Assembly (NCBI RefSeq): GCF_964204865.1
Contig: NC_135252.1
Coordinates: forward strand, 16,120,001 to 16,184,000
Origin: Styela clava
Taxonomy: Eukaryota
Direction of reading: 5' to 3'
Length of the DNA stretch: 64,000 nt
Made by a program: the position numbers and the translations under genes. The first letter of the stretch is position 1; each line of letters begins with the position of its first letter. Shown piece by piece: positions 22,101 to 60,083 of this stretch. The notes under the pieces are model-generated. The model saw nothing but the letters and a program-made list of their open reading frames with translations, searched no databases and was not told the origin of the DNA.

Positions 22101-22197
22101 TGACTCATGAAATACGCAACTGCCAATACTATATAAACTAGCAGTTGCGAGCTAGTCTGCACATCATCTTCTATACAACTCAACAGGAACTTCTAAG
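22101..22197 (+). promoter_or_regulatory. Core promoter and non-coding exon 1 of AMP copy A1
   Basis: AP-1 TGACTCA 22101..22107, CCAAT 22123..22127, TATATAAA 22130..22137, donor AAG|GTTGGT at 22197/22198. The acceptor immediately precedes the ATG. Confidence 0.65.
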
Positions 22198-22284
22198 GTT
22201 GGTGTGAAAACTGTTTGAAAATTTTGAAACTTGCGTATATAAACAAACCTCTTTGTTAACTCGCCGAAATTTTATTTCATCCAG

Positions 22285-23404
22285 ATGAATTTAAAGCTTC
22301 TCACTATTTTGCTACTCGTTGTCTTGTTGACAATCGACCTTGGTGACTCATGGGGACGCAGAAGACGCCGACGAGGTGGTAGGGGAAGAGGAAGAAGCGT
22401 CTGGAGAAGGGTTAAAAAAGCTACCAGGAAAGTTGGCAAATTCTACAAGAGAAACAGGTTGGTCGGAAAACTTCGTATCGCACTTAAAGAAGCGTATTTA
22501 TTTAAAAGCAATCAATGTGAAAAGTTAACAATATTCGAAAGTAATAAAATTTGTGGTCAACGTTTGATTTCTTACTCATATATATCTAGCCCTATCACAA
22601 TACAACCTCCACACAACAATGTAAAGTGTTGTGCAAAAGAATAATAACGCAATAGTGTAAAGCAAGCTGAGAGCATTGATATATATTTGAAGGTCCATTT
22701 TCGAAAAATTACAAAATTATTTCTACCTAAGAGATCCGGATGTAATGAACCTCGGACTCTGAAAAACAAGTCATGAATCATGGCTAAACAAGTATACTGT
22801 CAACTTTTTACAGAAAAACCATTCATAGAGTTGGAAAATGGGTACTTCGTGGAGCCGCCGCGTATGACAACGAAGACCTGAACAGCTTAAATCAGCTTAA
22901 GAATCAGGTAATGTCGACAAACATTGCTGAATTAAAAAACGAAAACTATGTCCTTTTATAATACTTCTATATCTGCTATATCTTTCATCATCGGTATTTA
23001 CCAGTGTGCAAATAGATCAATTGTATGAATTGTTAATTTATTTCCAGAATCTGGAATCGTATCAAGAGTACCTGGACAACCTGGAAGAAGCAATGAGTGA
23101 AATGTATCCGGAAGAAGACATTGATCAACTCATGGAAGCATTGGACAATGTCGTTGACATGAACGACGGTTTGTATTTTCTAAAGAAATAAAAGAACTAT
23201 TCTCAGTCACAAACAACTGCTTTCAAATCCTTGAATCCTTATCCTTTCATGACCTTCATAAAATACTTATAATGTTTTCCAAATTCAGAGGATCGTAAAG
23301 ATTTATTTGCGACTGCAAACGAGGAGATGCCTGAATTTGAGCCAATTCAAATGCCAGATGGGTTCAAAGATGAATTGGCGATGAGAGTTGCAAATCTTGC
23401 GTAA
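22285..23404 (+). CDS. Styelin-related cationic antimicrobial peptide precursor, copy A1 (167 aa, intact)
   Basis: join(22285..22457,22814..22907,23048..23168,23289..23404), all GT-AG with phases 2/0/1. Translation: MNLKLLTILLLVVLLTIDLGDS|WGRRRRRRGGRGRGRSVWRRVKKATRKVGKFYKRNRKTIHRVGKWVLRG|AAAYDNEDLNSLNQLKNQNLESYQEYLDNLEEAMSEMYPEEDIDQLMEALDNVVDMNDEDRKDLFATANEEMPEFEPIQMPDGFKDELAMRVANLA*. Non-coding exon 1 ends at 22197 (intron 22198..22284). AATAAA at 23558..23563. Confidence 0.88.
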
Positions 23405-25150
23405 TCTTCTCATCCCACTTATCGGCAATTTATTTTTATATTCTCAAAAATATATTTGAATACATTCGAACAGTTCGGAACATGATGCAGTTTTTAATCA
23501 TCAACAAAATGGAAGTTATCTTGAAATCTAATGGCTTTAGATGGCTCTTTATTTTCAAATAAATGCCTGCTTTTTAACAGTATACCATATTCAGAAAAAT
23601 TTACCAAAAGACCTTCGCGATACTCACTTATTCAATTTGTTACTGTTTAAAAATATATTTTTGAAATGTAAAATAAAATCTTTGTCGGAAAACTCTTGTG
23701 GATATTTCACCTATACAGCGTTGGAAAGAATCGAGAGACCTTTTTCAAATATTCGACGAGTCATTCGAATGAAAAGATTCGACTCGAACTAGGAATCCAT
23801 TAACCGACAGAAAGACTTGTCTCGAAAATAGCAAAAAAGAATTAGATCAAATACGATTTACATGGTAAATCAAAGTTCTATTGGGGAAATCAAACATTTA
23901 CATAACATAGTTGCTTCGAAATCTCTTTTGACATGCCAGAACTTAGAAATCATTTCTGAAATATTGTGGTGCAACAATAAAATATTAGTCAAATATAGGA
24001 ATTCTGAAAGACAACTGATTTTCTGCAAAACAGGACTGTGGAGTCGGGAATCGGAGTCACAGTTTGACATATTTTCACCAAAGTCAGAGTCCCGGAAACC
24101 GAACTCCCCGGAGTCATGAGTTGTATTCCTCGGAGTCGGAATTGCAGATTTTCAATGATGATAAAAGAAGTCATATTTTCAACGGAAACACAAAAGACGC
24201 CAAGTTAATATGCAACTTCTATATATATTTGCTGTTAATCTGTATATATAAAATTGCTCAATGGAAATTTGAGTTCGTTACTTGTCTCAAGACGGCGCTG
24301 CAGAGCCACTGTGAGTTACATTTAACTCCAGTCATTCTTCGAGTAAGATTGACCATAATTGGACACGAAATGGCCCTCTGTATCGTTTGCTATTATGTTG
24401 TTGTTCTTGTTGGCATTTTTTTTTGCTTTTGTTGTTGTGAAAAAATCGCCTTTCTCATTAACTATCTGACCGATTACCTTGAAATTTACAGTGGCTGAAA
24501 TTGTTGTTGTCGTAGAAGGCTGTTACTTTAATTTATGTCAAAAATAGCTGTAAGCTCTATGCAGACCGGGTTACTATAATTTTAATTATGAACGGATACT
24601 TTGAAGGCAGTTTTTAGAATATAAACGATTTAAAATAAAATAAAAATGATATTTGGTTTTGTTATTCAGGTTGATAATACTTGCCCAAATATTTTCCTTT
24701 CAGAAGGTTAAAAAATTAATATACGGCCGAATAAATAATTTTTTTCTAAATTTGATAAACTTTACTCTCTATTAATGACGTCATCTTCAAAAAGGGACTC
24801 ACGTATGGCATCACCAAGCCCCTCAACGTATAAATCCGGCCCTGACTCAAAGGGAATCGTTTTTTTTTTGTGTAGTGATGTAAAAAAATTAAAAATTACT
24901 TTAGCGTTTCGCGACCACATGTCACCGATCTCTTGGAAAGTAGGCTATCGGTTCTGTAAAATATTTGCTACTACAGTCGTGACTCCAGTCATTTGGTATT
25001 TTCAATTCACGTTGAAACTGAATGCATGATCATCATCGTTAAAAAACCTGGGAAAGTTAAGTCAGTCCGGGTACCGGTACTTTGGTACTGGTAAGTTACT
25101 GTAGCTGTTCCACAGTTGCAGCTTCGTTCAGTATGATTTTGGGGGAGATT

Positions 25151-25389
25151 AAAATTCCCGGTTTGGCTTTTGTGTCAATATATTTGATCATTGCTCTCGT
25201 GTTTATATTTATCCTGCTATGGCTAACGTCGACATGGTTTCGATGCAAATATAGCAAAGACATTGGTCTAAAATTCCCGGTTTGGCTTTCGTGTCAATAT
25301 ATTTGATCATTGCTCTCGTGTTTATATTTATCCTGCTATGGCTAACGTCGACATGGTTTCGATGCAAATTTAGCAAAGACATTGGTCTA
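25151..25389. repeat. 119-bp direct tandem duplication
   Basis: AAAATTCCCGGTTTGGCTTT...CATTGGTCTA occurs at 25151 and 25270. It is single-copy in the paralogous blocks (~36680, ~53540). Confidence 0.85.
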
Positions 25390-26794
25390 ACTCTAAGCTA
25401 ATGCGTTGGCATGATGTGTGTTTTTGTATTCGATAGAAGAAGGCTAGGCAGTTATAGCGACGGCCATATTGGAAAAATATGCTAATTTAGATACACTGCT
25501 ATTTGATAAGCCAGTAGTCACGACCGGAAAGCGATCCAATAATCTGCTGCTCCTCGAGCGTAGGTTATAAAATTAAATATGGTGAAAATTAGCAACCGCC
25601 ATTTTGTCGCTAAATTTCAGTGACGCCTCGCGGGCCGGATATGGCCCATGGGCCGTAGATTGCCAACCCCTGGCCCAGAGTATCCCTGCCTTACTTTGAG
25701 TTCAGCTATAGAATATTCTTCTTTCGTCTTTGTTACGTCATTTTGCTCCAAATCACGTTCACAATAATTTACGTAGCTTGCTTTATTTGCATGCAAACCT
25801 CAAACAGACGAGTTATTGAAATGGATTTTTGGTTCATATATTCCCTATTAATTCAGAAGAGAACAAATCCATACGTGAGGTGAAGTAAATTTTCATCTAT
25901 TTTAACCGTTTTTTCATCATATCTGCCGAAAAGAAATCTTTTTGAGAGCTTGAAACATCGATACGATTGGGTACCCTATATTCACCAATAAAACACAAGA
26001 TATTAAATAGGTCATTTTTTTATATTGTCTCTCTCATGCAGGACGTGTAGTGCAGTGGGCATGAAAATAATTTTATTTTTAATATATAGTACTGGTCAGC
26101 GTAATGAGTAAGTTTTCACAGCTAAATGAGTATTTCATATATATATGATTCGAGTTTGTAAATCATTATTACGCTCCTCAGCATGTACAGTATAATTGTA
26201 TGTAAATCGGTTTCGCATTTTAGATAAAAATCAAATTCGGCCTGATGGATTTATTATTAAATAATATGCGTCAGCGTTATATGATTTCTGTTTCGAGCTA
26301 GATGTAAACCTATAACAAGTAGTCATGAACACGTGGAATTCATTCATTTTCTTTATTGCTAAAATATTTCAGGGATACTTATCGTAGGCTTGTGTAGTGC
26401 GTATTCGATAGCAATTCTCTGAATAAATATATACTATGTCAATCGCTTTTACACTCAAAAGAAATTTGTTCATTCAATTTTCTCTTTCTTTTAACTCTTT
26501 TTAATTTATTTAATTCCCTCTTTTCTCCCGTTAGACGTTTCACAATTTGGAGATCAACTGCGTGCGCATCAAACGATCTCTTCAAAGCAGCTTGTAATAT
26601 TCTGCTAGTCCGAAGTGGCTCGGTTTATTCCTGTTTTTCTTGGATGATCAAATATAAATATCATCCGACCTTTCCTGAAAAATGAATGTACATGGAATGC
26701 ATCAAAACTAGTAAGTTAACTCAACAAAGATTATAATTGTTAGTATTTATTGTTGTCAAAATTGAGATGAACAATGTAGAGCCAAGAAGAAAAA

Positions 26795-27099
26795 AACAAG
26801 AATATCGGTCAGAGACCGAAGACGTATCGATCGAAAGCTAGGGGATTCCACAAAACAGCGCTCTTACTCCATAGTGACACCTTGTGTCCCATCACTAATT
26901 AACTGATAACTCGCTAATTATACGACATAATTCGCCCAAAATAAAAAGGCTTCTGTTACGAGATATGATGAATGCACATGCAAACAAAATCTGCAGCAGA
27001 TCCAATTTCGCTTTCGTGAGATATCGCGTTCATCTAACAGACGGACAGACAGACAAATACCTATCAACATACTTACCGATTAAAATCGATAAGTAATAA
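26795..27099. mobile_element. DINE-1/HINE-like non-autonomous Helentron; other copies at ~55087..55343 and ~62763..63085
   Basis: Starts AACAAGAATATCGG within an A-run, contains a GACG/GACA microsatellite and ends in the hairpin ACTTACCGAT-TAAA-ATCGATAAGT. It is absent at the paralogous sites ~38000 and ~56670. Confidence 0.55.
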
Positions 27100-28552
27100 C
27101 ACTCAGCACTTGATATCTCATAACTGGCATATTGTAACCTCCCCGCTTCAATTTGATTTTATCTAAAAGTTTGTCGCTCTGGAAGTATGTCCACCGACAT
27201 GCGCGCCTGGCTGATTTTCATCATTCCACCGTGAGCTACATGTAACCCTAACAAAAACGATGAAATAAAGGCGCTCCGTAGTATGTGCACCAAGATGGCG
27301 GATACCGGAACGTAGAATGTGTACCAGGTTTGGGTTAGGGCACAATTTTATTCCAATTTTCCCTTTTTCAGTTCTATTACTGTATTACGAGTTTGGGGAC
27401 TAGCCAAATGACTCCTGTAATATTTGTACCAGAAATTATGGCCTAACCCCAACCTGGTACACATACTACGTTCCGGTGTCTGCCATAATGGTGCACATAC
27501 TACGGGAGTACCAGAATAAATTTTATCTTCTTTAGTTTTTATCGCGATTTCATTGTTTCTGGCTACAAAATTAATCGCGAATGGCCTTAATTAATACCTA
27601 TTACTTAAGTCGTTCAAAGACAGGTCGGATGTAGAAATGCCGTATGACGAAATCTCTCGTACGCTAGTTTCCATGCACGTTATCCCATAAAATGAATTTG
27701 TTTCTCATCCGCTTACTATTCAAATCAGGTAGTTGGCTATGCAAACCATACACATAAAAATGTTTGGCACGCGAAAGTGCTCATTATTCATATACTGGCA
27801 CGCCGGGTTCAAAAGGTTGCCGACCCCTGCTGTATGGTATATAACTCAATGGACCTTTACCCGAGCATCGACTTCTTTGTTTACTTCGCGACATTGGCTA
27901 ATCAGCAGGATGCAAAAAGTGACGTAACAATGCTTCATTTTCACATCCGCCAAAGTGCCCCCCCCCCCATTCTTTCGATGCCGCTACAGTTGGCAATATA
28001 CCTTGCGATTCAAATAATTTTATTTATCACTAAATGCTGAAAATTGCGCAATCGCTTGTCAAAGAGAAAAGGTGTCTAACTTAAATATCAGAATTATCAC
28101 GAAAAAAAAGCATCATCATCAGGGCCGTACATAAAACGACGCCGTTGTGTGTAAGTAGAAGGTAGAATTTTTTTTCAAACAGGCTGTTACGAGCCTCGAC
28201 CCCCCCTCTGAATGCACCCCTGCACAATAAAAATACATTTGGCATCGCATAGGATAATAGCATTTAGATATTTGAGAATATACCAAGATTGGCAGCTTGA
28301 CAGTAAAATAATTAAACTGATCCCTCCTTATTTTCAACTGGATTGAACTCTCCTTATTTGTTTATCCTAAATTCTAGAATGTACTATTTCCATAAACTGT
28401 TCCATATGTTTGTGAATGTATGCAAATATAGTTTATATATATGTATTCAATATATTTATAAGCTTTTACTTACAGAAACAGCATATGTTTCAATGCACGA
28501 ATGAATGCTGCAAATAAATAATGTTGCAAATTGCGTAATGAACAATCTAGAA

Positions 28553-29629
28553 CAGTGGTTCTCAACCTTTTGCAGTTCCCGATGCGTCCACAAACGTGGT
28601 TGGCGCAAGGAGACGCAACAGATAATTGCCAGACATTGCGTGAACGACCCTGTGACGAGAACCACTTTGCGAAAATTGAAATACTACCGAATAAATGAGT
28701 TTGTATACCTTCGAAAAACTCTATTTAAAAATAAATGAGTTTGTATAACGTTGGAAAACTCTCACTTTAACCTTAAGAACAAAGTCTGCTAAGCATAAAT
28801 TAACCGAACAGTTTTAACCGTAATAACATTTATTTAAGGAGAAATATGTCAATACAGAAACACAAAATTCTTAGTATGGGGTCATAACAGATTAGTTTTG
28901 ACATCATTGCATCTGAGGGGTCTTGCAATTAACATAGCCTGTCTCGTCGTTTAACTCAGGTTGCCCCTGATGTAAGTATATTTTTCATTATCGTACCACA
29001 CCTGTTTTGCCGGTGGCTGCCTTGATTAAATAAATTTCATGATTTTTCTCACTCGAAACGTCTCTCTGGTATCTCGGATAAATATTCCTCTTAAAATCGT
29101 ATGACTTTGGTATAGATACATACTTGGCAATAGATGTAGGCAATAGAAGTGGAAGTCAAAGCAAGAATTTTTACTTACATTTTGAAAATATAATTCCGGC
29201 AGCGTATGCAGCTGCCAGAACGCAACGTTCTGGCGTAGTTTCACGGCGATGCGAGGGGTATTTTAACAAAAAATATAGAAAAAAAAATGATTCAATACAA
29301 GCCCTTGTTTTAAAACAAGATGTTTTTTCAGAATTGATAAAGTACAAAACCCTAACTATGTGCTATCAAACTCCTTCGTTATGACGTTAGCCCCCGTTAT
29401 GAGGCCATAGACTTAACAAACATCCAGCTGTTCAGAGTTTGAAATGGGCAGAGGACTTCTTACCAAGTTCGGTTGTTAGACGAATACCGGTACTACGAAT
29501 CAATAGGAGTTAAAATAAAATCATAAAACTAATGGATATGCCGTCAATACTTTGTATTTTGCTTATAATAGAAAAAAATTGACGGACCGGCAGCAACGTT
29601 GCCGCGGACCCGGCGGTTGAGAAACACTG
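28553..29629. mobile_element. Duplicate of the 18003..19068 hAT element
   Basis: CAGTGGTTCTCAACC / GGTTGAGAAACACTG, TSD ATCTAGAA. Confidence 0.85.
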
Positions 29630-32600
29630 ATCTAGAATCATTGCAGCATCACTAATGAAGGACAGGTATTAAAACAAAATTATGTAACGTTGAACATTTG
29701 ATGTAAATTTTCAGAGAAATATTACTTATACATCATTTTGTGTCATATATTTTAACACGGTAGAACAAATTGGGTTGTGCATGCCGACCTCGGCTCCTAC
29801 CTGAACATCACCCCTTAAATCATACAAAGCAGTATACTACAAAACTATGTACCCAGATGCCGGTACTGTACTTGGCATCTACGTTTCCTTAGAATGCCGT
29901 TCTCATGATTACCTCACTTGACGGTGCCCGGAGTCGAATTTTTGTATGTAATGAGTGTTTTATTTTCTTTCTTGTTGTTGCTGTTTTAATTTACATTGTT
30001 TGACTTAATACATGATGGTGAAAAAATAAAAGACTGATTAGTTACGGCCCTCTAATTTCGAGCAACTGCTCAATCTCTTTGCAAACCGTTTGTTGGCATT
30101 AAACAAAACGGTGATATTATTTACATACTATATTTCTAAATAAACTTTGCTTGCCCCTTTAGATGGGCAGAGTCGTGATGATTATATTAAAGGCGTCGGT
30201 ATAACTTTATATTGTGCGTGGAATGAGTGACTGCTATTTAAAACTTTGATACATATGTTTATCGAAAGCGCACGTAGTGAGTATTTTTGTCTCGACAAAT
30301 AATATAAAGTTTCTTCTAACAATATCGACATTTGTCAAAATACTACACTGAAACTTTCTATGGAATATAATACCAATGAGCTCCAATTTCCACTGAATAT
30401 AACTTGGTAAATAATTTTGGTTAACATTTTGAGCTAAATTATTCGACATTATCTACTATAAGCATAATAAATAATTGGTTTCAAGGTGATTATGTACCAA
30501 TATAATGACATTTTTACGTTGGCATTACATTGAAATGATTCGGTCATTCAATATACAACGTGAGGCAAATCAACGCATTTCATTTTGTAAAAAATAGACA
30601 AGAATAGGCTTTTTCAAATTTTCATTACATACTTAATAAGACATTTGATGCCATTTTTTTGGAAGAAACGTCTTACAATACACCCTGAAAATTTTCATCA
30701 CCCTCTGAGTGATTTTCCGTGGAATTCCATTCATTGTTTTGCAAATAGCAGCTTCCAGTCCATCAATGGTCTTGATCGGTTCTTGTACACCTCGCCCTTT
30801 AATTTACTCCAACAGAAAATAATGAGGAAATAATAAATAAGGTGAAGGGTCCTCAATCCATTGATTTTTTTTTTGCTGTATGGGAAGTTAGTCGAAACGA
30901 TACTTTTGCATTTTAATTCTTAAATATTGACACCATGCAGTATCCGCACATAAAGAGCTGAAGTAAGCAAAACCGTTTTTTTCTCCTTCAACTGCACACC
31001 ACACCCTCATGCCCTCGCTATGGAGAGGCTTTTTATGAAGCTCTCGAGGGTTTCTTCCTGCCTAGTACCAAAAAGTTTACTCATTGACAAAGCCAGATAA
31101 ATTAAAATGGGATCCGTCACTGGTAATCAGAATATCATTTGCAAGAATATTTTCAGTTACATAGGCTACTCTCTAATAGTGATAGAACATTTCACGATAA
31201 GTGCACGACGTTTACCTGCCCAAGCCATAAATATGCATCAACGATTTTTATGAAATTGATAATAAATCACTCGTTATTGAAATCTCACCCTGTAAAATTT
31301 GTATAAAGAAATTATTTAAAACTAAATAATCCTATTACATAGTAAGCCTATCAGTATTCTAAACATGCGTTTTCAATTGTTAAGAACAACATGTAGTTAC
31401 ATAGTTAAATAAAACTTACATTCTTACCAAACTAGAGGGCCCCATTTGCTAAACTTCGTAAAAAGTGAGTTTTACGAGCACACAGCTGTGTCTCTCAAAA
31501 ATACAATAGTGAAATCTCTTATTTGCAATTCGCGAAAGATCTCACAAACACTTGATGCACGGTTAATTAAATACATTCTCCGGAAATCTCACGCACGATC
31601 GTTGGTGAACAAGTAAATTATCACGCAACAGTTTGACTTTGCCCCGTCAGTCACCTGGGTAGGGCAAGTATAGTTTGTAACAACTCGCTGGCTTGCTTTG
31701 CAATCATTCACTTAAACCTGGTAATCATGCCGCTAGACAAGACATAGAAATGGTTCCGTATTTTGGGACCATCAAATCTTTGGGAAATGTCTTTTCCCGT
31801 TCGACGCAGCGTGGGGAAAAGCTATACGATGCCGTTTCGTTGGTTTAAAAAGATAGGTACTCATGTAGTATGTGAACCGAGAAGGCGGACGCCGGAACGT
31901 GGTGCGTGTGCAGGGTTGGGGTAAAACAATAATTTCAGGTACAAATACTACGGGAGTCACTTGGCTAATCCCCGAACTCGTAATAGAACTAAAATGGGAA
32001 AAATTAGAATATAATTATGTCCTTACCATCATGGTGCACATACTACGGGAGCGCCAAAAGATGAGACCCTAGTTGGGGCGTTGGAGTTCTAGAACAGAAT
32101 CAGTAAACCCATAAAGTTGTATCTTAAAAAATAGTTCTTTTGATTGAGACCATTGAAGCAAATGGCAGTCAAACAAACGACTGTCAAATCGACGGACAAC
32201 AAATCGTCGTGAACGTTTTAATTAACTAATTTTGTTGTACCTTCGATTCTCAATGAGCGAGAAAAGGTTGTGCGATGTTGTTTTATTGAAATGATAGAAA
32301 GGGATGAAATAAAGAATACTAATTATCATGACATTCGAGCCGAGAAAGACACGAAAAGTGCAACTGTGGAAGACCTTGTTATACCAAATGACCGTTCAAC
32401 GGTTATATTGCTTATTATTTAGTGTCGTTATCAAATTTCTGGTTACCTATTTTGTATTGCGTGATAGAGAAAAGTCAATTTAACGTTAGCTGGGAAAGAA
32501 AACGGTAATCAAATTAGCACTGACAGAATTGTTGTTCCGAGCCTCTGTTGATTATCACAAATAGTTAATAGCAGTCACGATTGTTTTATTTATATTCATT

Positions 32601-32681
32601 TTCTGAACAAGTATAATAAACATACCAAGGGTAGTAACAATGAAAAACAAACCGAACTATATTGAATTACTCACTCAGTCA

Positions 32682-32778
32682 TGACTCATGAAATACGCAA
32701 CCGCCAATACTATATAAATTAGCAGTTGCGAGCTAGTCTGCACATCATCTTCTATACAACTCAACAGGAACTTCTAAG
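32682..32778 (+). promoter_or_regulatory. Core promoter and exon 1 of AMP copy A2
   Basis: TGACTCA 32682..32688, TATATAAA 32711..32718, donor at 32778/32779. Confidence 0.62.
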
Positions 32779-32865
32779 GTTGGTGTGAAAACTGTTTGAA
32801 AATTTTGAAACTTGCGTATATAAACAAACCTCTTTGTTAACTCGCCGAAATTTTATTTCAACCAG

Positions 32866-34034
32866 ATGAATTTAAAGCTTCTCACTATTTTGCTTCTCGT
32901 TGTCTTGTTGACAATCGACCTTGGTGACTCATGGGGACGCAGAAGACGCCGACGAGGTGGTAGGGGAAGAGGAAGAAGCGTCTGGAGAAGGGCTAAAAAA
33001 GCTATCAGGAAAGTTGGCAAATTCTACAAGAGAAACAGGTTGGTCGGAAAACTTGGTATCGCACTCAAAGAAACATATTTTTTTAAAAGCAATCACTTCG
33101 GAAAGTTAACAATATTCGAAAGTAATAAAATTTGTTGTCAAAGTTGGATTTCTTATTCAAATATATCTAGCCCTATCACAATACAACCTCCACACAACAA
33201 TGTGAAGTGTTAGACAAACGAATAAATACTCAAAAATGCAAGCAAGCTGAGAGCATTGATATATATTTGTAAGTCCATTTTCGAAAAATGACAAAATTAT
33301 TTCAACATAAGAGATCCGGATGTAATGAACCTCGGACTCTAAAAAACAAGTCACGAATTATAGCTAAACAAGAACACTGTCAACATTTTACAGGAAAACC
33401 ATTCATAGAGTTGGAAGAATAGTACTTCGTGGAGCAGCCGCGTATGACAACGAAGACCAGAATAACTTAAATCAGCTTAAGAATCAGGTAATGTCGACAA
33501 AAATTGCTGAAATAAAAAACGAAAACTATGTCCTTTTATAATACTTCTATATCTGCTTCATCTTTCATCATCAGTATATACCACAGTGTGCAAATAGATC
33601 AATTGTATGATTTGTTAAATCTTTTCGAGAATCTGGAATCTTATCAAGAGTACCTGGACAACATGGAAGAAGCAATGAATGAAATGTATCCGGAAGAAGA
33701 CATTGATCAACTTACGGAAGCATTGGACAGTGTCGTTGACATGAACGACGGTTTGTATTTTCTAATGAAATAAAAGAACTATTATCAGTCACAAAAATGG
33801 CCATTCGGTGACGAACACCCTAATTTAAGACATGGTCTGCAAAGCTGTAAACACGATCAACAAACAACTGCTTTCAAATCCATGAATCCTTATCCTTTCA
33901 TAATCTTCATAAAATAATAATAATGTTTTCCAATTTCAGAAGATCTTAAAGATTTATATGCGACTGCAAACGAGGAGATGCATGAAGTTAGGCCAATTCA
34001 ATACAATTCAAATGCCAGATGGGTTCAAAGATGA
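32866..34034 (+). CDS. Styelin-related AMP precursor, copy A2 (160 aa; +10-nt frameshift in last exon)
   Basis: join(32866..33038,33394..33487,33630..33750,33940..34034). Cationic region WGRRRRRRGGRGRGRSVWRRAKKAIRKVGKFYKRNRKTIHRVGRIVLRG. The exon-4 acceptor is GAG. The last exon reads EDLKDLYATANEEMHEVRPIQYNSNARWVQR*, and the ancestral stop at 34063..34065 is now out of frame. Confidence 0.8.
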
Positions 34035-35051
34035 ATTGGCGATGAGAGTTGCAAATCTTGCGTAATCTTCTCATCCCACTTATCGGCAATTTACTTTTAT
34101 ATTCTCAAAAATATTTGAATACATTCGAACAGTTCGGAACATGATGCAGTTTTTGATTATGAGCAAAATGGGCGTCATCTTGAAGTTCAATGGCTTTTTA
34201 TTTTCAAATAAATGCCTGCTTTTTAATAGTACTGTATACCATATTCAGAAAAATTCATCAAAAGACCTACGCGATTCACTTCAATTTGTTACTGTTTGAA
34301 AATGTATTTTTAAAAGGTAAAATAAAATCTTTGTCGGAAAACTCTTGTGGATATTTCACCTATATATACAGCGTTGGAAAGAATCGAGAGACCCTTCTCA
34401 AATATTCGACGAGTCATTCGAATGAAAAGATTTGACTCGAACTAGGAATTCAATAACCGACAGAAAGACTTGTCTTGAAAATAGCAAAAAAAAATTAGAT
34501 CAAATACGATTTACATCGTAAATCAATGTTCTATTCGGGAAATCAAACATTTACATAACATAGTTGCTTCGAAATCTCTTTCGACATGCCAGAACTTAGA
34601 AATCATTTTAAAAATATTGTGATGCAACAATAAAATATAGGAATTCTGAAGGACAACTGATTCTCTGCAAAACAGGACTGTGGAGTCGGGAATCAAAGTC
34701 ACAGTTTGACATGCTTTCACCAAAGTCAGAGTCCCGGAAACCGAACTCCCCGGAGTCATGAGTTGGAGTCGAAAATCTGTATTCCTCGGAGTCGGAATTG
34801 CAGATTTTCAATGATGATAAAAGAAGTCATATTTTCAACGGAAACACAAAAGACGCCAAATTAATATGCAACATATATATATATTTGCTGTTAATCTGTA
34901 TAAATAAAATTGCTCAATTGAAATTTGAGTTCGTTACATGTCTCAAGACGGCGCTGCAGAGCTACTGTGAGTTACATTTAACTCCAGTCATTCTTCGAGT
35001 AAGATTGACCATTATCGGACACGAAATGGGCCTCTGTATCTTTTTGCTATT

Positions 35052-48944: not shown

Positions 48945-49206
48945 ATTGGCGATGAGAGTAGCAAATCTTGCGTAATCTTCTCATCCCACTTATCGGCAAT
49001 TTACTTCTATATTCTCAAAAATATTTGAATACATTCGAACAGTTGAACATGATGCAGTTTTTGATTATCAGCAAAATGGGCGTCATCTTGAAGTTCAATG
49101 GCTTTGGATGGCTCTTTATTTTCAAATAAATGCCTGTTTTTTAACAGTACTGTATACCATATTCAGCAAATATTTACCAAAAGACCTCCGCGATACTCAC
49201 TCATTC

Positions 49207-52045
49207 CAATGAGCATATATACAATGAGTGGATGACTTCCAAATATTTGCTCATTAATCCCTTATGCCCTGCATATTTACTTCGTCCAGCTAAATCGTTT
49301 GTTGCATATGGAGAAAGCATATTGCTCGCTGCAAAAATCCCTTGCTTCGGCCGCGCCGGTTGCAAAATTGGCCGTATTGAGGCTTTTAATTTTTCGATTC
49401 GTGTTCGGTTTTGGGTTTCGAAGTATGGTACGTTGAAAACATACTAACTATAAGCATATGCTTATTTGGAATGCATATCTATTAGCTACAGCACAGAATA
49501 TGAAGTCAAGTGCGGTTATTTCTGATTATAGCATGGGATTTAGGTACATATTTATCCATGGGAAAGGAAAGGGATAAGAAGTCCTAAATATATGGCGAAC
49601 CACAGCTTCTCGCAATCATAGTTTATAAGGCGCTCCATACGAAGCCCCAGGGCTCTCCGATTTCAAATCACTCTGGCAGTCTGGGATATCTTGACAATAA
49701 AAACGAAGACAAAAATTAGAAGAATAGCAGGGAATCGGCTTTCCTCTCCACATGAGTAAATATGTTAACCCCATCCTATATCAATGAATACAAAGCCCCA
49801 CGTCCCTCTTAACATGGGTCGTAACGAGTGGTGGGATTCAAATTTTTTGTCAGCTGGTTCCATCACAAAAGTCATAGTTTTCGACCGGTTCTGTTACATG
49901 TTTTTTAGTAATGCTGACCGATTCGATGATCTCATTAAATTCCGTGAGACGGTTCTATAGAACGGGTAAATCCCACCACTGGTCTTAACCCCCCCCCCCC
50001 CCTTGGTTTGAGAAAAAATTTTCATGCGAAATTTCCTCCACAAAAAAGCAGCACCGTCGTTTTAAGGTCGCGCATTATGGTTTCGTCAAAACGATATTAT
50101 TCTGCGTATTATCACCGCAGCGCAATTAACACCGCCATACTTTTTTATTTTTACGATATGTTATTTTTTTAGTTGGCGCTGATAATGACAAATGAGAATG
50201 CGCCCTTCGAAATGAAAGAAGGGTTATGAGCTAATTTCAGGACATTCTATTCCCGATTTCTTTTATTTTAATACAAAGCAGGGCGCATTGAAAAGCAAAA
50301 TAGAATTTACTAACATAAATTTACAACGAGTTACGTATAATTTACCGACGGCTATCGCCAAGAAACAGAAACGATGAATGTGAGAATTTTTTATTTTGTG
50401 TCATTTTTGCGCCATCATATTTTTCAATTTCTAATTTTGCGTAAATCGCGTCAACATCGTTTTGGTAAATTTAGAAACGTTGAATCAGATAAGCAAGGCA
50501 TGTGAATAATGTATTCTATGCAAATTTCCCGAGATGTTGCGGAGAAATAACATTTTGACCACGTAGAAATGCCATTATTGCTGATTTATTCACGTGTTAA
50601 GTATCAGTGTTTTAAACCAAACCTGAGTTACGTGAATACTCAACACTGAGTATTCTAGAGATTACCAATTTGCGGAGTTTTTTAATTATTATTTAATATG
50701 AAAAAAACACGGAAACGATATAAAATTAAAACATAAAAATGTCAACTATCAGCTTCACAAATATCGCATCCCGGGGTCAGTAATGATAATATTGTTTGCT
50801 CAAAATTGGGACCGTAACTGTGATACAAATCCAACACAGAAGATAAAAATCAGAATTAAATTAATTTTTGTTGTGAATACATTTCTTAATAGTTGTCTTT
50901 AACATCTTCGCCGATGTTCGTTAAAATTTCGAATAATTTTATTTAAAAAAAAATACGGTTTGCTCACCACTAATCACGGTGCATGTAAATAATCAATAAA
51001 TGACAATAAAAAATCAACTTTGTTAGCATTAAATTCCAAGGAAAATTTCCACATTTCATGATTCGATCGGCGCTACACGCGAGCGTGTTTTTGTATATAT
51101 TCACCAAACACCGTCAAAAAAACAGAGGCGAGCTACACGTGACTGTGGAATTTCGCTGTGAACGACGCATTGTTTTTAATTTATTACACGCCTCACGCCG
51201 TCGTGAATTGAACTTTTGGCGCACTGTTTTAATTTCACCGTATGCCCCCACCCCGTTGGAAAAATCCTGGCTGCGACCCTTGTTCAAATTCTATATCTCA
51301 CTATTGATTACAAAAGTATAATTGCATCCAAATCAACAGTATCTATATATATGACTATATGAAGGATCGTTAAAATTAAATAATATACATGCAAAAATCA
51401 TAATTGATAACAAAATGTACTCTAAATAATAAAATAAAAAACAAACTTTTTTGTGTAAATTCACAAGACATGAAGATGGCAAATTTTAAATTTCAATGGC
51501 AAGATGTCCCGGAGTAATTTATAGGTAAAATCAGTATTTTCAATAAGTATACGAATAGCTCACAAAATCCAGACAGCCTGGGGGTTCATTTGGAGCACAG
51601 AGCTATTTGGAGAGGCCGTGGTTCGCCATTTATTAGGCTTTCGGCTTTCCTCTCCCCCTGGATAAATATGTAAGTCACATGTTATATCAATGAATAAATA
51701 CAGCAATAACTGCACCCCACGTGGCGACTGATTCATATTCTGTTCTGTAGCTACGTTTTCTGCCTAATAGATATATATGTATTCCCAATATGCATATGCT
51801 TATAGTTAGTATGCTTTCAACGTACCATACTTCGAAACCCAAAACCGAACACGATTCGAAAAATTAAAAGCCTCAATACGGCCAATTTCGCACTCGACCC
51901 AGCAGAAACAAGGGATTTTTGCAGCGAACGATGTGCTTTCTTCATATGCAACGAACCATTTAGCTGGACGACTTAAAAATGCAGGGCACAATGGATTAAT
52001 GAGCAAATATTTGGAAGTTTCCACTCATTGTATATATGCTCATTG
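49207..52045. mobile_element. Non-autonomous foldback DNA transposon with long TIRs (~270 bp well matched, degenerate to ~460 bp) and a 7-bp TSD; P/Galileo-like
   Basis: Ends are CAATGAGCATATATACAATGAGTGGA ... CCACTCATTGTATATATGCTCATTG. Flanks are CTCATTC (49200..49206) and CTTATTC (52046..52052). The empty paralogous site near 23627 has a single CTTATTC. No transposase ORF. Confidence 0.85.
49826..49981. mobile_element. Small hAT MITE nested in the foldback element
   Basis: AGTGGTGGGATT / AATCCCACCACTG, with flanks GTCGTAAC / GTCTTAAC (7/8 match). Confidence 0.7.
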
Positions 52046-55000
52046 CTTATTCAATTTGTTACTGTTTAAAAATGTATTTTTGAAATGTAAAATAAAATCT
52101 TTGTCGGAAAACTCTCGTGGATATTTCACCTATACAGCGTTGGAAAGAATCGAGAGACCTTTTTCAAATATTCGACGAGTCATTCGAATGAAAAGATTCG
52201 ACTCGAACTAGGAATCCACTAACCGACAGAAAGACTTGTCTCGAAAATAGCAAAAAAGAATTAAATCAAATACGATTTACATCGTAAATCAAAGTTCTAT
52301 TGGTGAAATCAAATATTTACTTAACATAGTTGCTTCGAAATCTCTTTTGACATGCCAGAACTTAGAAATCATTTCTGAAATATTGTGGTGCAACAATAAA
52401 ATATGAGTCAAATATAGGAATTCTGGAAGACAACGGATTCTCTGCAAAATAGGACTGTGGAGTCGGGAATCGAAGTCACAGTTTGACATATTTTCACCAA
52501 AGTCAGGGTCCCGGAAACCGAACTCCTCGGAGTCATGAGTTGGAGTCGAAAATCTGTATTCCTCGGAGTCGGAATTGCAGATTTTGAATGATGATAAGAA
52601 AAGTCATATTTTCAACGGAAACACAAAAAACGCCAAGTTAATTTGCAACTTATATATATATTTGCTGTTAATCTGTATATATAAAATTGCTCAATGGAAA
52701 TTTGAGTTCGTTAGTTGTCTCAAGACGGCGCTGCAGAGCCACTATTGCTATTATTTTGTTGTTCTTGTTGGCATTTTTTTTTGCTTTTGTTGTTGTGAAA
52801 AAATCGCCTTTCTCATTAACTATCTGACCGATTACTTTGAAATTTACAGTGGCTGAAATTGTTGTTGTCGTAGAAGGCTGTTACTTTAATTTATGTCAAA
52901 AATAGCTGTAAGCTCTATGCAGGGCCGGGTTACTATAATTTCAATTATGGGCGGATACTTTGAAGGCATTTTTTGGAATATAAACGATTTAAAATAAAAT
53001 AAAAATGATATTTAGTTTTGTTATTCAGGTTGATAATACTTGCCCAAATATTTTCCGTTCAGAAAGTTAAAAAATTAATATACGGCCGAATAAATAATTT
53101 TTTTCTAAATTTGGAAAACTTTACACTCTATTAATAACGTCATCTTCGAAAAGGGACTCACGTATGACATCACCAAGCCCCTCAACGTATAAATCCGGCC
53201 CTGACTCAAAGGGAATCGTTTTTTTTGTGTAGTGATGTTAAAAAATTAAAAATTACTTCAGCGTTTCGTGACCACATGTCACCGATCTCTTGGTCAACGA
53301 AGACGGGAGTTTTTATTAAGCTGAAAGTAGGCTATCGGTTCTGTAAAATATTTGCTACTACAGTTGTGACTCCAGTCATTTGGTATTTCAATTCACGTTG
53401 AAACTGAATGCATGATCATCATCGTTAAAAAAACTGGAAAACTTAGGACAGTCCGGGTACCGGTACTTTGGTACTGGTAAGTTACTGTAGCTGTTCCACA
53501 GTTGCAGCTTCGTTCAGGATGATTTTGGGGGAGATTAAAATTCCCGGTTTGACTTTGGTGTCAATATATTTGATCATTGCTCTCGTGTTTATATTTATCC
53601 TGCTATGGCTAACGTCGACATGGTTTCGATGCAAATATAGCGAAGACATTGGTCTAACTCTAAGCTAATGCGTTAGCATGATGTGTATTTTTGTATTCGA
53701 TAGAAGAAGGCTAGGCAGTTATAGCGACGGCCATATTGGAAAAATATGCAAATTTAGATACCCTGCTATTTGATAAGCCAGTAGTCACGACCGGAAAGCG
53801 ATCCAATAATCTGCTGCTCCTCGAGCGTAGGTTTTAAAATTAAATTATGGTTAAAATTAGAAACCGCCATTTTGTCGCTAAATTTCAGTGAAGCCTCGCG
53901 GGCCGGATATGGCACATGGGCCGTAGATTGCCGACCCCTGGCCTAGAGTATCCCTGCCTTACTTTGAGTTCAGCTATAGAATATTCTTCTTTCGCCTTTG
54001 TTACGTCACTTTGCTCCAAATCACGTTCACAATAATTTACGTAGCTTGCTTTATTTGCATGCAAACCTCAAACAGACGAGTTATTGAAATGGATTTTGGT
54101 TCATATATTCCGTATTAATTAATTAGAGAACAAATCCATACGTGAGGTGAAGTAAATTTTCATCTATTTTAACCGTTTTTTCATCATATCTGCCGAAAAT
54201 AAATCTTTTTGAGAGCTTGAAACATCGATACCATTGGGTACCATAAATTCACCAATAAAACACAAGATATTAAATAGGTCATTTTTTTTATATTGTCTCT
54301 CTCATGCAGGACGTGTATTGCAGTGGGCATGAAAATAATTTTATTTTTAATATATAGTACTGGTCAGCGCAATGAGTAAGTTTTCACAGCTTATAGCTTA
54401 TCTGAGTTTAATATATATATATATATATATATATATGATCCAAATTTGTAAATCATTGTTACGCTTCACAGCTAATTGTATGTATAGTGATTTTGCCTTC
54501 TAGATAAAAATAAAATTCGGCCATATGGATTTATTATTAAATGATGTGCGTCAGCGTTATATGATTTCTGTTTCGAGCTAAATGTAAAAATTTAACAAGT
54601 AGTCATGAACACGTGCAATTCATTCATTTTCTTTATTGCTGAAATGTTTTAAGGATACTTATTGTAGGATTGTGTAGTGCGTATTCGATAGCAATTCTCT
54701 GAATAAATATATACTATGTCAATCGCTTTTACACTCATAAGCAATTTTTTCATTTCAATTTTCTCCTTTTTTTTTACCTCTTTTTAATTCATTCAATTCC
54801 CTCTTTTCTTCCCTTAAGACTTTTCACGATTTGGAGAACAACTGCGTGCGCATCAAACGATCTCTTCAAAGCAGCTTGTAATATTCTGCTAGTCCGAAGT
54901 GGCTCGGTTTTCCTCGTGTTTTTCTTGGATGATCAAATATTAATATCATCCGACCTTCCTGAAAAATGAATGTACATGAAATGCATCGGAAATAGTTTAG

Positions 55001-57579
55001 TAAATTAACTCAACAAAGATGATAAATGTTAGCATTTATTGTTGTCAAAATTGAGATGAACAATGTTGAGCCAAGAAGAAAAAAAAAACAAGAATATCTT
55101 TCAGAGACCGAAGACTTATCGATCGAAAGTTAGGGGACAGCGCTCATATTCCATAGTGACACCTTGTGTCCCATCACTAATTAATTGATAACTCGCTAAT
55201 TATACGACATAATTCGCCCAAAATCAATAGGCTTCTGGTTCGAGATATGATGAATGCACATGCAAACAAAATCTGCAACAGACGGACAGACAGACAGACA
55301 AATACCTATCAACGTACTTACCGATTAAAATCGATAAGTAATAACACTCAGCACTCGATATCTCACAACTGGCATATTGTAACCTCCCCGCTTTAATTCG
55401 ATTTTATCTAAAAGTTTGGCGCTCCGGAAGTATGTCCACCGAGATGGCGCACAACCTGAACCCTAACCTGGTACACATACTATGTTCAGGTTGTGAATCC
55501 TAACCTGGTACACATACTATGTTCAGGTTGTGCGTCATCTTGGTGCACATACTTCAGGAGCACCAAACGATCTCCTCCTTGCGCGTTTGGTACGTCATTT
55601 TCCTCCAGATCACTTCACACTAATTTACGAAGCTTGCTTTATTTGCGTGCAAATCTCGAACAGACGAAAAATTCAGATAAATTCTTGGTGGTAACCGGAC
55701 GACATACCGTGGTCCGCCGTATGATTAAGCAATAATAAGAAGGGAATAAATCCACACGTGAGGTGAATTAAATACCTCAATGTAGTTCATCATATCAGCC
55801 GATAAGAAATATTTTAGAGAGCTTGAAATATCCATAAGATTCGGTATTAATCATGAAATTCACCAATAAAACACAAAAGATTAAATAGCTCATTTTTTTA
55901 TTTTGTCTCTCTCATGCAGGACGTGTATTGCAGTGAGCATGGAAATAGTTTTATTTTTAATATATAAATAAATACTGGTCAGTGCAATGAGTATTTTTTC
56001 ACAGGTTATCTGAGTATTTAATATATATATGATCTGAGTTCGTAAACCATTATTACGCTTCTCAGCATGTACAATATAATTGTATGCAAATCGGTTTCGC
56101 CTTTTAGATAAAATAAAAATGCGACCATATGGATTTATTATTAAGTGATGTGCGTCAGCGTTATATGATTTCTGTTTCGAGCTAAATGTAAAAATATAAC
56201 AAGTAGTCATGAACACGTGGAATTCATTCATTTTCTTTATTGCTGAAAGATTTTAAGGATACTTATTGTAGGATTGTGTAGTGCGTATTTGATAGCAATT
56301 CTCTGAATAAATATATACTATGTCATTTTTTTTACACTCATAAGAAATTTTTGCATTTCAATTTTCTCCTCTTTTAACCTTTTTCAACTCATTTAATTCT
56401 CTCTTTTCTTCCGTCTGACCTTTCACGATTTGGAGAACAATTGTGTGCGCATCAAACGATCTCTTCAAAGCAGCTCGTAATATTCTGCTAATCTGAACTG
56501 GCTCGGTTTATTCTTCATTCTCTTGATTGATCAAATATAGATATCATCCGACCTTTCCTAAAAAATGAATGTACATAAATGCATCAAAATTAGTAAGTTA
56601 ACTCAACAAAGATGATAATTGTTAGTATTTATTGTTGTCAAAATTGAGATGAACAATGTTGAGCCAAAAAGGAAGAAATACAAATTGTACCTTAGAGTTA
56701 CAATCCCTACCTATATCAAATATGCTGAACAGATGTATAAAAAATCACCATCTTTCCAGAGTTCGATAATTTCAAATTTTCATTTATAAAATATATGCAG
56801 AATTGTGGAATAGAGGGGTCTATAGCGTTTGATATATTAAAATTGTTCAAACTTCCTTTAAATTTTTGGTAACCTTTTAAACGTTGTTAGACAATATTAA
56901 GTCACGAAACAATTGAAAAATATTAGTTTCATACTCCTATGACGCAGCATGTATGACGCAGGCCAGGAAAATAGCATTCTCACCCTCAAAAGGGAACTTG
57001 TTGATAGACCTATGCCAGTTTTCATAGCTTATCTAACTATATATCAAAGTCTCAAACATGATTTCTTTCGCCGATTTCTATCATATCCGCTACAAAAAGT
57101 GTGAAAACAATTGGGACATGCTTGTATGAAGTTTCGTTTCGTTATTTGTTTCTTAAAAATAACATGCCGAGCAAACATATGTATATATGTTGCCTCATGT
57201 GCGTCAGCGTTATATCCTTTCTGTTTCGAGACATTGAATAAATTTTGAATATAACAAAGCAATCATAAACATATGGACACTAATTTATGATAATAAGTAA
57301 CGAAAATGCGAAAAATAAACGGAATTTCATACCTAATTTAATGAGAAAAAGTTATCAAAGCAATTTCAAATAAACATTTTCTCTCTCGATTCATTATAGG
57401 TACCATAAAAAACATCCATATAAGCGACTCCTCAAGGAGCATTTGAGAACTTGAAATTTAATAAACTTTAATTATGATCAATTTGCTCCACAATATCCAA
57501 TCCTTCAGCTCCACTGCTTGGAAACTTGGCCAATTTCAATTTGCATAAAAATGGTTTGCCTCAATATACGTGATACAAT

Positions 57580-57714
57580 ATACGCAACGTGATAAACTAC
57601 ACGACTTATCAATTTAATAAAAATAATAACCGATGATTCGATATAAAGAGCGTTCGCCCAGAAGTTGATTCACAACAAACTAGTTTGATGATCTGAGAAA
57701 CCAGATTACTCAAG
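57580..57714 (+). promoter_or_regulatory. Core promoter and exon 1 of AMP paralogue B
   Basis: GATA motifs (TGATAA, CTTATC) lie just upstream of TATAAA 57642..57647. Perfect donor AAG|GTAAGT at 57714/57715. Intron 57715..58072 ends in TTTTCAG directly before the ATG. Confidence 0.62.
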
Positions 57715-58072
57715 GTAAGTGATCTGAATATTTTCACGACATCTTCACTGGACGGCTTCGACGTCAAAAATTGTAGTTTTCACTCAAATGTATTGCTGTG
57801 ATTTTGGGAAAGGATATATATAGGATACTTGTATACAAAGCATATTTGTGTATGAAAAGTATGCATAACATGAAACATTAACGAAAGAGTATAATAGGTC
57901 AATATCGTACGTCTTAGCTTAACTAATATTCTAAATTATTCTGTTGTAACACAGGAGCACTTCAAGGTTTAAAGATAAAAAAAAATACCAATTACCGACA
58001 TTTTGAAAAATAGTTTGCGGTTGAAGAAAAAGTATCGTTCGTTACTTGTATTTTATAATTTTTTGTTTTCAG

Positions 58073-59699
58073 ATGAATTTCAAATTTCTTGCCTTACTGC
58101 TTCTTATTGCCCTGTTGACAATCGATAGTGGCGATGCTTGGGGACGTCGTAGAAGAAGAGGTAGAAGAGGAGGTTGGTTCCGCAGAGTAGTCCGGGGGGT
58201 GGGAGGATTTGTTAAAAAAGGGATCAAGTTTTACAAAAGACACAAGTAAGATTGTTAAACATAAGTTTTACTGCATGAGTAAATTATAAGTTGGGTATAT
58301 ATATAATTTGCTTATTCTGATATTCATTTCTGATTTATAGATTATAGTGGCTTTACTGACAAAATCACACGAATTATTGGAGACGAAGTGGACATAACGA
58401 TCGTTTCAAAATTTTGTTGTTATTGTTATTGTTATTTGTCTCCGTCTCCATTTTTAAAAAATCGCTTTTCTCTTCGAATACTGGACCAATTGATTTGAAT
58501 TGATTTTCAGTGGCTAAAGATAAAACTTTTCTCCAGAAAGCTATTACTTTTTTTTCGCTATGACGTCATCAAAATTATTGCCATTGAGTGGCGCTACGTG
58601 CCCATATATTTGAGCATAGCTCTCTTGTATTATAAAATGAAGACAGATTTATTCTGTTATTTGAATGGTTCTACTAGATATATATTCATTATGTTAACTG
58701 GACAACGTTATTTGCTCACTTTATTAAACAGTCATAAATATATAAGAATAAATGGTTTTATTTTGTCACATGCAACCACAACAACACAGCGCTTAACACA
58801 ACATTTCTTCTTGTTTTATTTAAACTTTGTTTAAAAAGTGAAAACACCCCGTGAAATAACCTTATCAAGCAGTAAAACTAGAAAAAACATTTTTTTTTGT
58901 GAGTTTTAGTGGTTTTCCAGGAAAAACCTTTTGTGTTATTTTCAAACGTAACTGTGACGTTTTTGTTTACGTGCACAGGTCTGTTATTCATAAAGTAGGA
59001 GGCGCCATTTTTAAAATGTTTGGAGACAATGAAGCTTTGGAAAATTTGGCAACTTTGAAAAATCAGGTATATTGAGTATAATCGAAGAGATGTTGTAATT
59101 GATTTGAGTGTCTTTTTGTATTTATTTAAATATAGTTACCTTAATTTTAAGGATCTCGAATCGTATGGAGATTTCATGGACAACCTAAAATCTGCTTTGG
59201 AAGAAAATTATCCCGATCAAGACAGTGAAGATATAATGCAAATGATAGACGATGTTGCTGATATGAAGAAAGGCAAGTTATTTAAGGTTTTTGTGATATC
59301 ATTCACATTTATCCTATCTTAATGTCAACAAGCCCTGCAAAAGGGAATTCTATCAAGAATAAATAATATTTAATCCTACCCTCGAAATAATTCCAAAAAT
59401 TATCATTAAATTGGCCCAACGAAACGCCCCGCAAAAAAGGTGATTTTATTTATATATACGAAAGGATAACAATTAACAAGAATTTTGACCGCAGGCAAAG
59501 TAGTAGCACTTACAACATTTTTTTAATACCTAATGAGTAAATCAACTATACAACCGAATGTTAATTATATTCCTTAATATCAGACGAACGCGCCGAATTC
59601 ATGTCGATGATAAAAGAGGAGATGGAGAATGTTGAGCATGATCCTTTGTCAGATCAAGTCAAGGAAGAACTGTCGATGAGAATTGCCAATCTTGAATAA
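58073..59699 (+). CDS. Styelin-related AMP precursor, divergent paralogue B (165 aa, intact)
   Basis: join(58073..58245,58979..59066,59152..59272,59584..59699). Exon lengths are 173/88/121/116 versus 173/94/121/116 in A1, with identical phases. The last intron is GC-AG (AAG|GCAAGT). Translation: MNFKFLALLLLIALLTIDSGDA|WGRRRRRGRRGGWFRRVVRGVGGFVKKGIKFYKRHKSVIHKVGGAIFKMFG|DNEALENLATLKNQDLESYGDFMDNLKSALEENYPDQDSEDIMQMIDDVADMKKDERAEFMSMIKEEMENVEHDPLSDQVKEELSMRIANLE*. AATAAA at 59720..59725. Confidence 0.88.
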
Positions 59700-60083
59700 T
59701 GCTATGGATCTGAATTTCAAATAAATATATGATTATCGTCATGTTTAGTTTTACGTGAATTAGTACACACTGACCACCAAAACTATTAGGCCCATAACGA
59801 TTCAACCATAATTTTATTGAAATAAAAAAAATAATGTGAAATAATCCTTTTTTTGTCGCAATTATATTTTTATGGGGCTGTTAAAGGCTGGCTGGCAGAG
59901 TCGCAATCGAAATGCAATGCGTACATTATGAAAAAAGGGACAAAATGTACTTATCCATATTTCAATGTAATTCTATTCAAATTATACTGAGTGGTCCTGT
60001 AGTTCAAGCGAATGCATCAAAATCGGTGCAACATATTGCTCTATTCCGTGGATGATGGTCGACCTACATCAGAAGTTCTAAAT

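Follow-up and report, generated by a model that had tools for sequence, protein, structure and literature searches.

Four probable members of the botryllin family in a tandem gene array of the ascidian Styela clava

Styelins are ascidian antimicrobial peptides that were reportedly purified from Styela clava in 1997. Here we describe four further genes of this species which very probably encode styelin-related antimicrobial-peptide precursors of a second known family, that of botryllin from Botryllus, and which are probably expressed in haemocytes. The genes lie in a window of 64,000 nucleotides (nt), the whole stretch of DNA that was analysed, on the S. clava contig C3 (C3:16120001-16184000), and their positions are given below in window numbering. 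A reading of the DNA, combined with tblastn and manual exon placement, placed all four on the + strand with four coding exons apiece. Three of them, A1, A2 and A3, are near-identical, and the fourth, B, is divergent.

Botryllin (GenBank WCR67982.1 / OP851480) was mined from Botryllus in 2023 and is a pre-propeptide 158 amino acids (aa) long with a 23-residue signal (Franchi, Ballarin & Cima 2023, Mar Drugs 21:74; PMC9966394). Its mature peptide, deduced to be 37 aa long, is 30-37.5% identical to styelins (PMC9966394). In situ hybridisation has shown that botryllin is transcribed in cytotoxic morula cells, antibodies against it label both the granules of these cells and extracellular traps, and the synthetic 37-mer kills bacteria and yeast with a minimum inhibitory concentration of 3.1-50 µg/mL (PMC9966394). 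Furin is found in morula-cell granules and has been proposed to mature botryllin, while the oligo-Arg leader that precedes the peptide was assumed to be discarded (PMC9966394).

Likeness to botryllin

The database searches used single exons or, as joined proteins, the RefSeq entries identical to the A1, A3 and B models. When the A1 protein (P0001) was compared by phmmer with 1.84 billion representative proteins, six matches were returned; 1) P0002, P0003 and P0005, which are S. clava paralogues encoded on the same contig; 2) one paralogue from contig C4 (P0007); 3) P0004, with an E-value of 1.9e-10, which a cluster look-up identified as the 158-aa botryllin of Botryllus schlosseri, WCR67982.1; and, 4) a 572-aa JGI protein (P0006), which is a spurious acidic-repeat match. 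BLASTP gave 37% identity between B and botryllin over 139 residues (E 2e-23) and 32% for A1 (E 5e-14), with alignments that cover residues 3-134 and thus take in the signal, the leader, the core and much of the acidic tail. Moreover, when 5.8 billion proteins were searched with a profile, the matches were S. clava proteins and botryllin alone, apart from an EF-hand protein of Haliotis (P0015), another spurious match through acidic repeats.

The two sets of precursors, both from species of the Styelidae, also agree in their motifs. Common to the aligned precursors are the leader WGRRRRRG, the elements GWF(K/R)(K/R) and (F/W)Y-x-KHK-x-x-IHKVGGA of the core, a signal of 22-23 aa and a long anionic C-terminal propiece, in which (Y/F)P-(D/E)-x-D and D(E/P)DER recur as motifs. 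In B the leader and core elements read WGRRRRRG, GWFRR and KRHKSVIHKVGGA, and A1-A3 have WGRRRRRRG together with KRNRKTIHRVG, a variant of the botryllin core. The S. clava proteins have a signal and an anionic propiece of the same kind and a total length of 160-167 aa, against 158 aa in botryllin.

Because botryllin matches across leader, core and tail, a poly-Arg, long-prodomain, styelin-related family has already been described, and botryllin is moreover both published and experimentally characterised. An earlier, sequence-only reading of this DNA had regarded the family as apparently undescribed, which does not hold; it had also named a match to a characterised family as a finding that would speak against it, and such a match exists, as homology to botryllin and not as identity. 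On their sequence, the S. clava genes appear as new members, and as a lineage-specific expansion, of the botryllin family. There are differences, however. A single gene has been reported in Botryllus, whereas S. clava has a tandem array; type A adds an Arg/Gly extension, GGRGRGRS, and has (V/F)W for GWF and KRNR for KHK; B carries an extra 7-aa insert (GFVKKGI); and the C-type neighbours in S. clava have a much shorter core. What is possibly new is the S. clava expansion, the Arg/Gly-rich leader of type A and a frameshift common to A2 and A3.

Gene models and precursor anatomy

The open reading frames at 22285, 32866, 47778 and 58046/58073 all open with a near-identical hydrophobic leader followed by WGRRRRR, and the start ATGs were placed at 22285 (A1), 32866 (A2), 47778 (A3) and 58073 (B). 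The coding exons of A1 measure 173/94/121/116 nt and those of B 173/88/121/116 nt, with the final exon of A2 and A3 reduced to 95 coding nt owing to the frameshift. The coding introns are in phases 2, 0 and 1 in 4/4 genes, and the splice sites are AG/GT throughout, with the sole exception of a GC donor in B (59273).

Specifically, coding exon 1 of A1 (22285..22457, +, 173 nt, ending in phase 2) encodes the signal, the leader WG-RRRRRR-GGRGRGRS and the N-terminal part of a styelin-like helix as far as FYKRN(R); exon 2 (22814..22907, +, 94 nt, ending in phase 0) runs from KTIHRVGKW... through the end of the cationic region to the start of the acidic propiece (...LNQLKNQ); exon 3 (23048..23168, +, 121 nt, ending in phase 1) encodes acidic helices (NLESYQEYLDNLEE...YPEED...); and exon 4 (23289..23404, +, 116 nt with a TAA stop) encodes the acidic C-terminus ...DELAMRVANLA. 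A2 (32866..34034, +) has coding exons at 32866-33038, 33394-33487, 33630-33750 and 33940-34034, with all splice sites AG/GT, and A3 (47778..48944, +) at 47778-47950, 48307-48400, 48541-48661 and 48850-48944; each encodes 160 aa. In B, exon 1 (58073..58245, +, 173 nt) encodes the signal, the leader WGRRRRRGRRG and GWFRRVVRGVGGF...FYKRH(K); exon 2 (58979..59066, +, 88 nt) encodes SVIHKVGGAIFKMFG followed by DNEALENLATLKNQ; exon 3 (59152..59272, +, 121 nt) is followed by the GC donor at 59273-59274; and exon 4 (59584..59699, +, 116 nt with a TAA stop) ends in ...EELSMRIANLE. The last intron of B (59273-59583) thus has a GC-AG boundary with the donor GCAAGT, and the RefSeq protein LOC120342944 needs that junction, between MKK and DER.

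The proposal of four 5-exon genes with conserved sizes and phases stands with one caveat: there are four genes, exon sizes are near-constant and the phases agree, but there are four coding exons, and a putative fifth, non-coding 5' exon is suggested only by conserved splice signals at its donor and acceptor and by a TATA box. In A1 this putative first exon lies at 22160..22197 (+), with a donor GT at 22198 and an acceptor AG at 22283-22284, downstream of a TATA box read as TATATAAA at ~22133-22140 (+). It shows 0/38 differences among A1, A2 and A3, and a comparable donor context in B ends at 57966.

A search with exon 1 of A1 (open frame 22285-22641, residues 1-57 scored) found two S. clava RefSeq proteins, at 100% (LOC120343518) and 87% identity. 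By script comparison the A1 splice model is identical to LOC120343518 (P0001, 167 aa); the A3 model matches LOC120343457 (P0002, 160 aa) and the B model LOC120342944 (P0003, 165 aa). All three are named "uncharacterized protein" in RefSeq, where protein identifiers were recovered for A1, A3 and B and none for A2. A search of the available literature found no paper naming the five LOC identifiers or dealing with these genes under S. clava antimicrobial-peptide topics.

In all four products the N-terminal signal peptide is 22 aa long, ends in G-D-S or G-D-A and has a good -3/-1 cleavage site, and the leader W-G-(R)5-6 follows it in 4/4 proteins. The cationic stretch of 51-53 aa contains no Asp or Glu and has a net charge of +18 to +23, and the tail of 85-92 aa has a net charge of -16 to -22 (A1-A3 and B). 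As the two parts offset each other the propeptide is near neutral, at -2 to +6 in the four proteins and -5 to +6 over the wider family. This anatomy is as the sequence-only reading had described it, namely a signal, a purely cationic region of about 50 aa that opens with a WG-(R)5-6 leader, and an acidic tail. One alternative, which the same reading had listed among the findings that would speak against it, is that these are protamine-like nuclear basic proteins of the testis, and in this respect only the Arg-rich composition fits. A hydrophobic N-terminal signal ending G-D-(S/A), which a nuclear protein free of secretory signals should lack, and a long acidic tail are present in every copy, and there is homology to botryllin, a secreted granule protein; the sequence thus disfavours a protamine, which we consider exceedingly improbable.

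If helical, the cationic part is strongly amphipathic, with an 18-residue hydrophobic moment of 0.75-0.86 in A1, A3 and B and of 0.56-0.98 in the wider family, and each gene contains a styelin/botryllin core of the form (K/G)(F/W)Y-x-(K/R)-x-(K/R)-x-x-IH-(K/R)-VG. Next to the signal, the oligo-Arg leader is the most conserved part of the sequence, and residues W23, R25, R26, R29, G30 and W35 are invariant in 10 paralogues. An AlphaFold2 model of B, made from a 10-sequence family alignment, has a mean predicted local distance difference test (pLDDT) score of 71.9 and a predicted template modelling (pTM) score of 0.61. In this model leader residues 18-44 are disordered, core residues 46-71 are helical, and tail residues 75-165 are all helical, forming five helices with a block pLDDT of 71-92. 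Foldseek found nothing in the PDB at E <= 0.001 for the B model, and the tail is predicted to be a generic helical bundle. Pfam also gave weak matches of 12-16 bits to Gag_p24_C, Gal4_dimer and other models, which do not come near the respective cut-offs and were set aside as noise from helical and acidic composition.

By homology with botryllin and the styelins, the signal would be removed after GDS or GDA, and the neutral propeptide would be stored in the granules of cytotoxic morula cells. Upon degranulation a furin-type convertase would cut at the oligo-Arg and other basic sites, with removal of the acidic propiece, and the freed helix of 35-50 aa would disrupt microbial membranes. In B, the junction ...MF-G-D resembles ...L-G-D of styelins and would permit C-terminal amidation. 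The oligo-Arg leader may be either discarded or kept in the active peptide.

Two other roles can be proposed for the same architecture. The first is that these are indeed botryllin homologues, but that their main role is not direct killing, the oligo-Arg run and cationic helix acting instead as a polyanion-binding or cell-penetrating module, for example in an extracellular-trap scaffold, in the packing of granules, or in the formation of tunic or wound clots. Anti-botryllin antibodies do label extracellular traps, and the propeptide is found in granules (PMC9966394). Furthermore, the 10 paralogues all keep the W, R, R, R and G positions of the leader while their core varies or is nearly gone (28-34 aa in the C types), and the tail resembles a folded domain in the B model. 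Nevertheless, the synthetic botryllin core kills bacteria and yeast (PMC9966394) and the S. clava cores are strongly amphipathic and styelin-like, and we regard a principally non-killing role as improbable. The second is that the genes encode precursors of a prohormone or neuropeptide type, in which the oligo-Arg run would serve only for cleavage by a convertase and the bioactive product would come from the acidic part. Multibasic sites beside acidic spacers are typical of prohormones and the tail is more conserved than the core in some paralogues, but the proteins lack repeated peptide units, the tail is not flanked by internal dibasic sites, and the homology to styelins and to the morula-cell product botryllin is clear, which leaves a prohormone with very little probability. 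Antimicrobial-peptide precursors of the botryllin family are the reading we favour.

Relation to the styelins

A scan of the S. clava genome with the Pfam Styelin profile PF17562 located three true styelin genes on contig C10 (C10:16.31-16.34 Mb), with exons scoring 27.6-41.6 bits. Their peptides begin GWLRKAAKSVGKFYYKHK, GWFGKAFRSVSNFYKKHKTYIH and GWFSKVASSVGRFYKKHKTYIH (loci L040-L042), their exons measure 113/58(55)/57/18 nt with intron phases 2, 0 and 0, and their precursors are 81 aa long. The middle gene of this cluster (L041, C10:16332000-16335000, minus strand) encodes the peptide beginning GWFSKVASSVGRFYKKHKTYIH, which we take to be unlike styelins A-E and which may be an unreported styelin variant.

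The styelins C, D and E of the same species resemble the proteins described here in their order of signal, cationic helix and anionic tail and in an FYK(K/R)HK-x-x-IH core, with kfykrhkktih in the family profile aligned to FYKKHKTYIH in styelin. A hidden Markov model of 11 botryllin-type proteins scored the spliced styelins at 24.5-28.0 bits, values reached by 0/1000 shuffles, the best of which scored 11.5. When the signal was removed, a profile of A1, A3, B and botryllin still gave the styelins 11.8-17.6 bits, reached by 0/2000 shuffles that preserved segments by keeping the cationic and acidic parts apart; with a profile of the whole family, two styelins beat every shuffle and the third (L040) was equalled by 28/2000. 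Botryllin-type and styelin genes agree in the phases of their first two coding introns (2, 0), and the phase-0 intron stands at the same point in both families, right before the exon that starts x-x-E-x-(F/Y)-x-(D/E)-(F/Y)-(L/M).

The differences from styelins are nonetheless considerable. The styelin signal is followed directly by GW with no leader, where the genes described here have an oligo-Arg leader of 10-16 aa; the mature styelin of 31-32 aa comes straight after the signal and is followed by a tail of 25-26 aa, against about 90 aa here; and the two gene sets are on different chromosome-scale contigs, C10 and C3. We conclude that the botryllin-type genes and the styelins appear to share ancestry and yet to form separate families, for which the term styelin-related is fair. 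On this point the sequence-only reading was accurate. The styelin beginnings that it gave are those encoded by C10 genes (GWLRKAAKSVGKFYYKHK and GWFGKAFRSVSNFYKKHKTYIH), its estimate of about twice the styelin precursor length corresponds to 160-167 aa against 81 aa, its view of a styelin relationship agrees with the profile scores above shuffles and with the first two intron phases, and its separation of the family from classical styelins agrees with scores below the PF17562 cut-off, the doubled length, the added leader and the other contig.

Several observations weigh against taking the four genes as styelin-related members of the botryllin family that encode functional precursors. With PF17562, A1 scores 8.2 bits, A3 10.6, B 11.3 and botryllin itself 16.9, and since the cut-off is 27 bits none of these is a styelin by the Pfam criterion. 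Both families have the phase-2 intron within the helix, yet its position measured from the FYK-x-HK motif is two codons further on in botryllin-type genes. A maximum-likelihood tree of 10 family members left B, A, C and botryllin as an unresolved fork and singled out no S. clava orthologue of botryllin, and the termini of mature botryllin were deduced in silico, not measured (PMC9966394). Finally, the last coding exon of both A2 (~33994-34013) and A3 (~48904-48923) contains the same tandem duplication of 10 nt (CAATTCAATA-like).

The array and the wider family

This duplication shifts the frame over the last 18 codons of A2 and A3, so that the conserved ending is lost and replaced by 10 unrelated residues. 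It is conceivable, although rather unlikely in our judgement, that only A1 and B are functional and that A2 and A3 are young pseudogenes. Both copies carry the duplication, the old frame of A2 downstream of it is still almost identical to A1, and both have lost the C-terminal motif (D/E)EL-x-x-R-x-A that is conserved in A1, B and the C types. Against this, the open reading frame is otherwise intact, as is every splice site, the duplication leaves the cationic peptide and most of the propiece as they were, RefSeq models A3 as a 160-aa protein, and botryllin and the C4 paralogues likewise lack the motif. A2 and A3 may be decaying.

Self-BLASTN of the window showed that the A genes lie in tandem segmental duplications (13909..57568). 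Specifically, 13909-23213 matches 39464-48706 at 96.5-97.7% identity, 16192-24396 matches 27196-35053 at ~90-95%, and 27196-34275 matches 41745-49194 at ~90-98%. Within the A copies (22285-23404, 32866-34065 and 47778-48975) identity is mosaic; introns 2-3 are closest between A1 and A3, whereas A2 and A3 have the same exon 2, from which that of A1 differs by 9.6%. Such a mosaic suggests gene conversion or unequal exchange within the array, and A1-A3 appear to be recent tandem duplicates reshuffled by gene conversion. An identical open frame of 124 aa occurs at 16685-17059 and at 42238-42612, in two duplicated upstream units, and is probably a piece of repeat carried along by the segmental duplication.

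Exon 1 differs between A1 and A3 at 6 nucleotides, which change 5 amino acids. By the Nei-Gojobori method pN/pS (the ratio of non-synonymous to synonymous differences) over residues 23-75 is ~1.3 for A1-A3 and ~0.8 for A1-A2, with 0 synonymous and 4 non-synonymous differences for A2-A3, and in the tail it is 0.4-0.8 among the A copies. Positive selection in the cationic core was considered and rejected: the counts lean to replacements but are not significant, with 0-2 synonymous changes in the core.

In total, the S. clava genome contains at least 23 exon-2 matches at E <= 10, 16 of them at E < 0.01. They are grouped at four places, namely C3:16.14-16.24 Mb, C3:7.75-7.78 Mb, C18:11.41-11.46 Mb and C4:7.12 Mb, and the clusters other than that of the window were read from 3-kb loci. 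The array itself runs past the window, with at least six C-type genes that have a short core of 28-34 aa (C3:16188470-16218764). The exon for the signal and W-oligoArg also occurs in the C3:7.75-7.78 Mb (L007, L012 and L013) and C18:11.41-11.46 Mb (L014, L015 and L017-L019) clusters. In the C3:7.75 Mb cluster, signal and leader match the family alignment with E 1.5e-14 by hhalign, and an acidic exon aligns to the exon-3 position with E 3.6e-4. The C4:7.12 Mb pair (L016 and L020) is a leader-less, styelin-like variant with GWFRRGW in place of the oligo-Arg run, and these paralogues, as noted above for the motif, end differently from A1, B and the C types.

Some features of these loci stand apart. 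Just past the window (L043:1549-2412, C3:16185549 onward) is a family member whose core consists of WLKW only and which has no oligo-Arg, and the RefSeq model LOC120343565 (P0013, 210 aa) appears to join the tail exons of this copy onto the next gene, at 16188470. The C3:7.75 Mb and C18 clusters have quite different long cationic cores with acidic exons downstream, and the C18 set is rich in Tyr and His, with one or two Cys after the Arg run. RefSeq names were retrieved for family members other than the C3:7.75 and C18 genes, and all are "uncharacterized".

A tentative extension, which we hold as possible but not as probable, is that S. clava has a previously unreported superfamily of at least 23 genes in four clusters, in which the C3 and C18 genes reuse one scaffold, with the signal conserved, the W-(G)-oligoarginine leader invariant, the cationic core free to vary and the propiece acidic. 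The oligo-Arg leader would then be a functional module, and the styelins and botryllin two branches of the superfamily. If this is the case the leader could act, for example, as a convertase switch or as a tag for granule sorting or cell penetration. Cathelicidins and the precursors of amphibian skin peptides likewise combine a conserved prepro scaffold with a variable cationic peptide, tandem amplification and a charge-balancing acidic propiece. They have no sequence relationship to the genes described here, however, in which the peptide has an oligo-Arg leader before it and the propiece on its C-terminal side.

The four genes do not represent a new kind of molecule, and their value lies in the annotation of loci now named "uncharacterized protein" and in comparative immunology. 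Two families of ascidian antimicrobial peptides that have so far been handled separately are now linked through a common core motif and intron phases, and a species that makes styelins is seen to carry a tandem array of botryllin-type genes as well. The array also provides named candidates for testing, in the peptide of B, those of the A genes with a leader rich in Arg and Gly, and the C types with a short core, and with them a natural series for asking what role the oligo-arginine leader and the charge-balancing propiece play.

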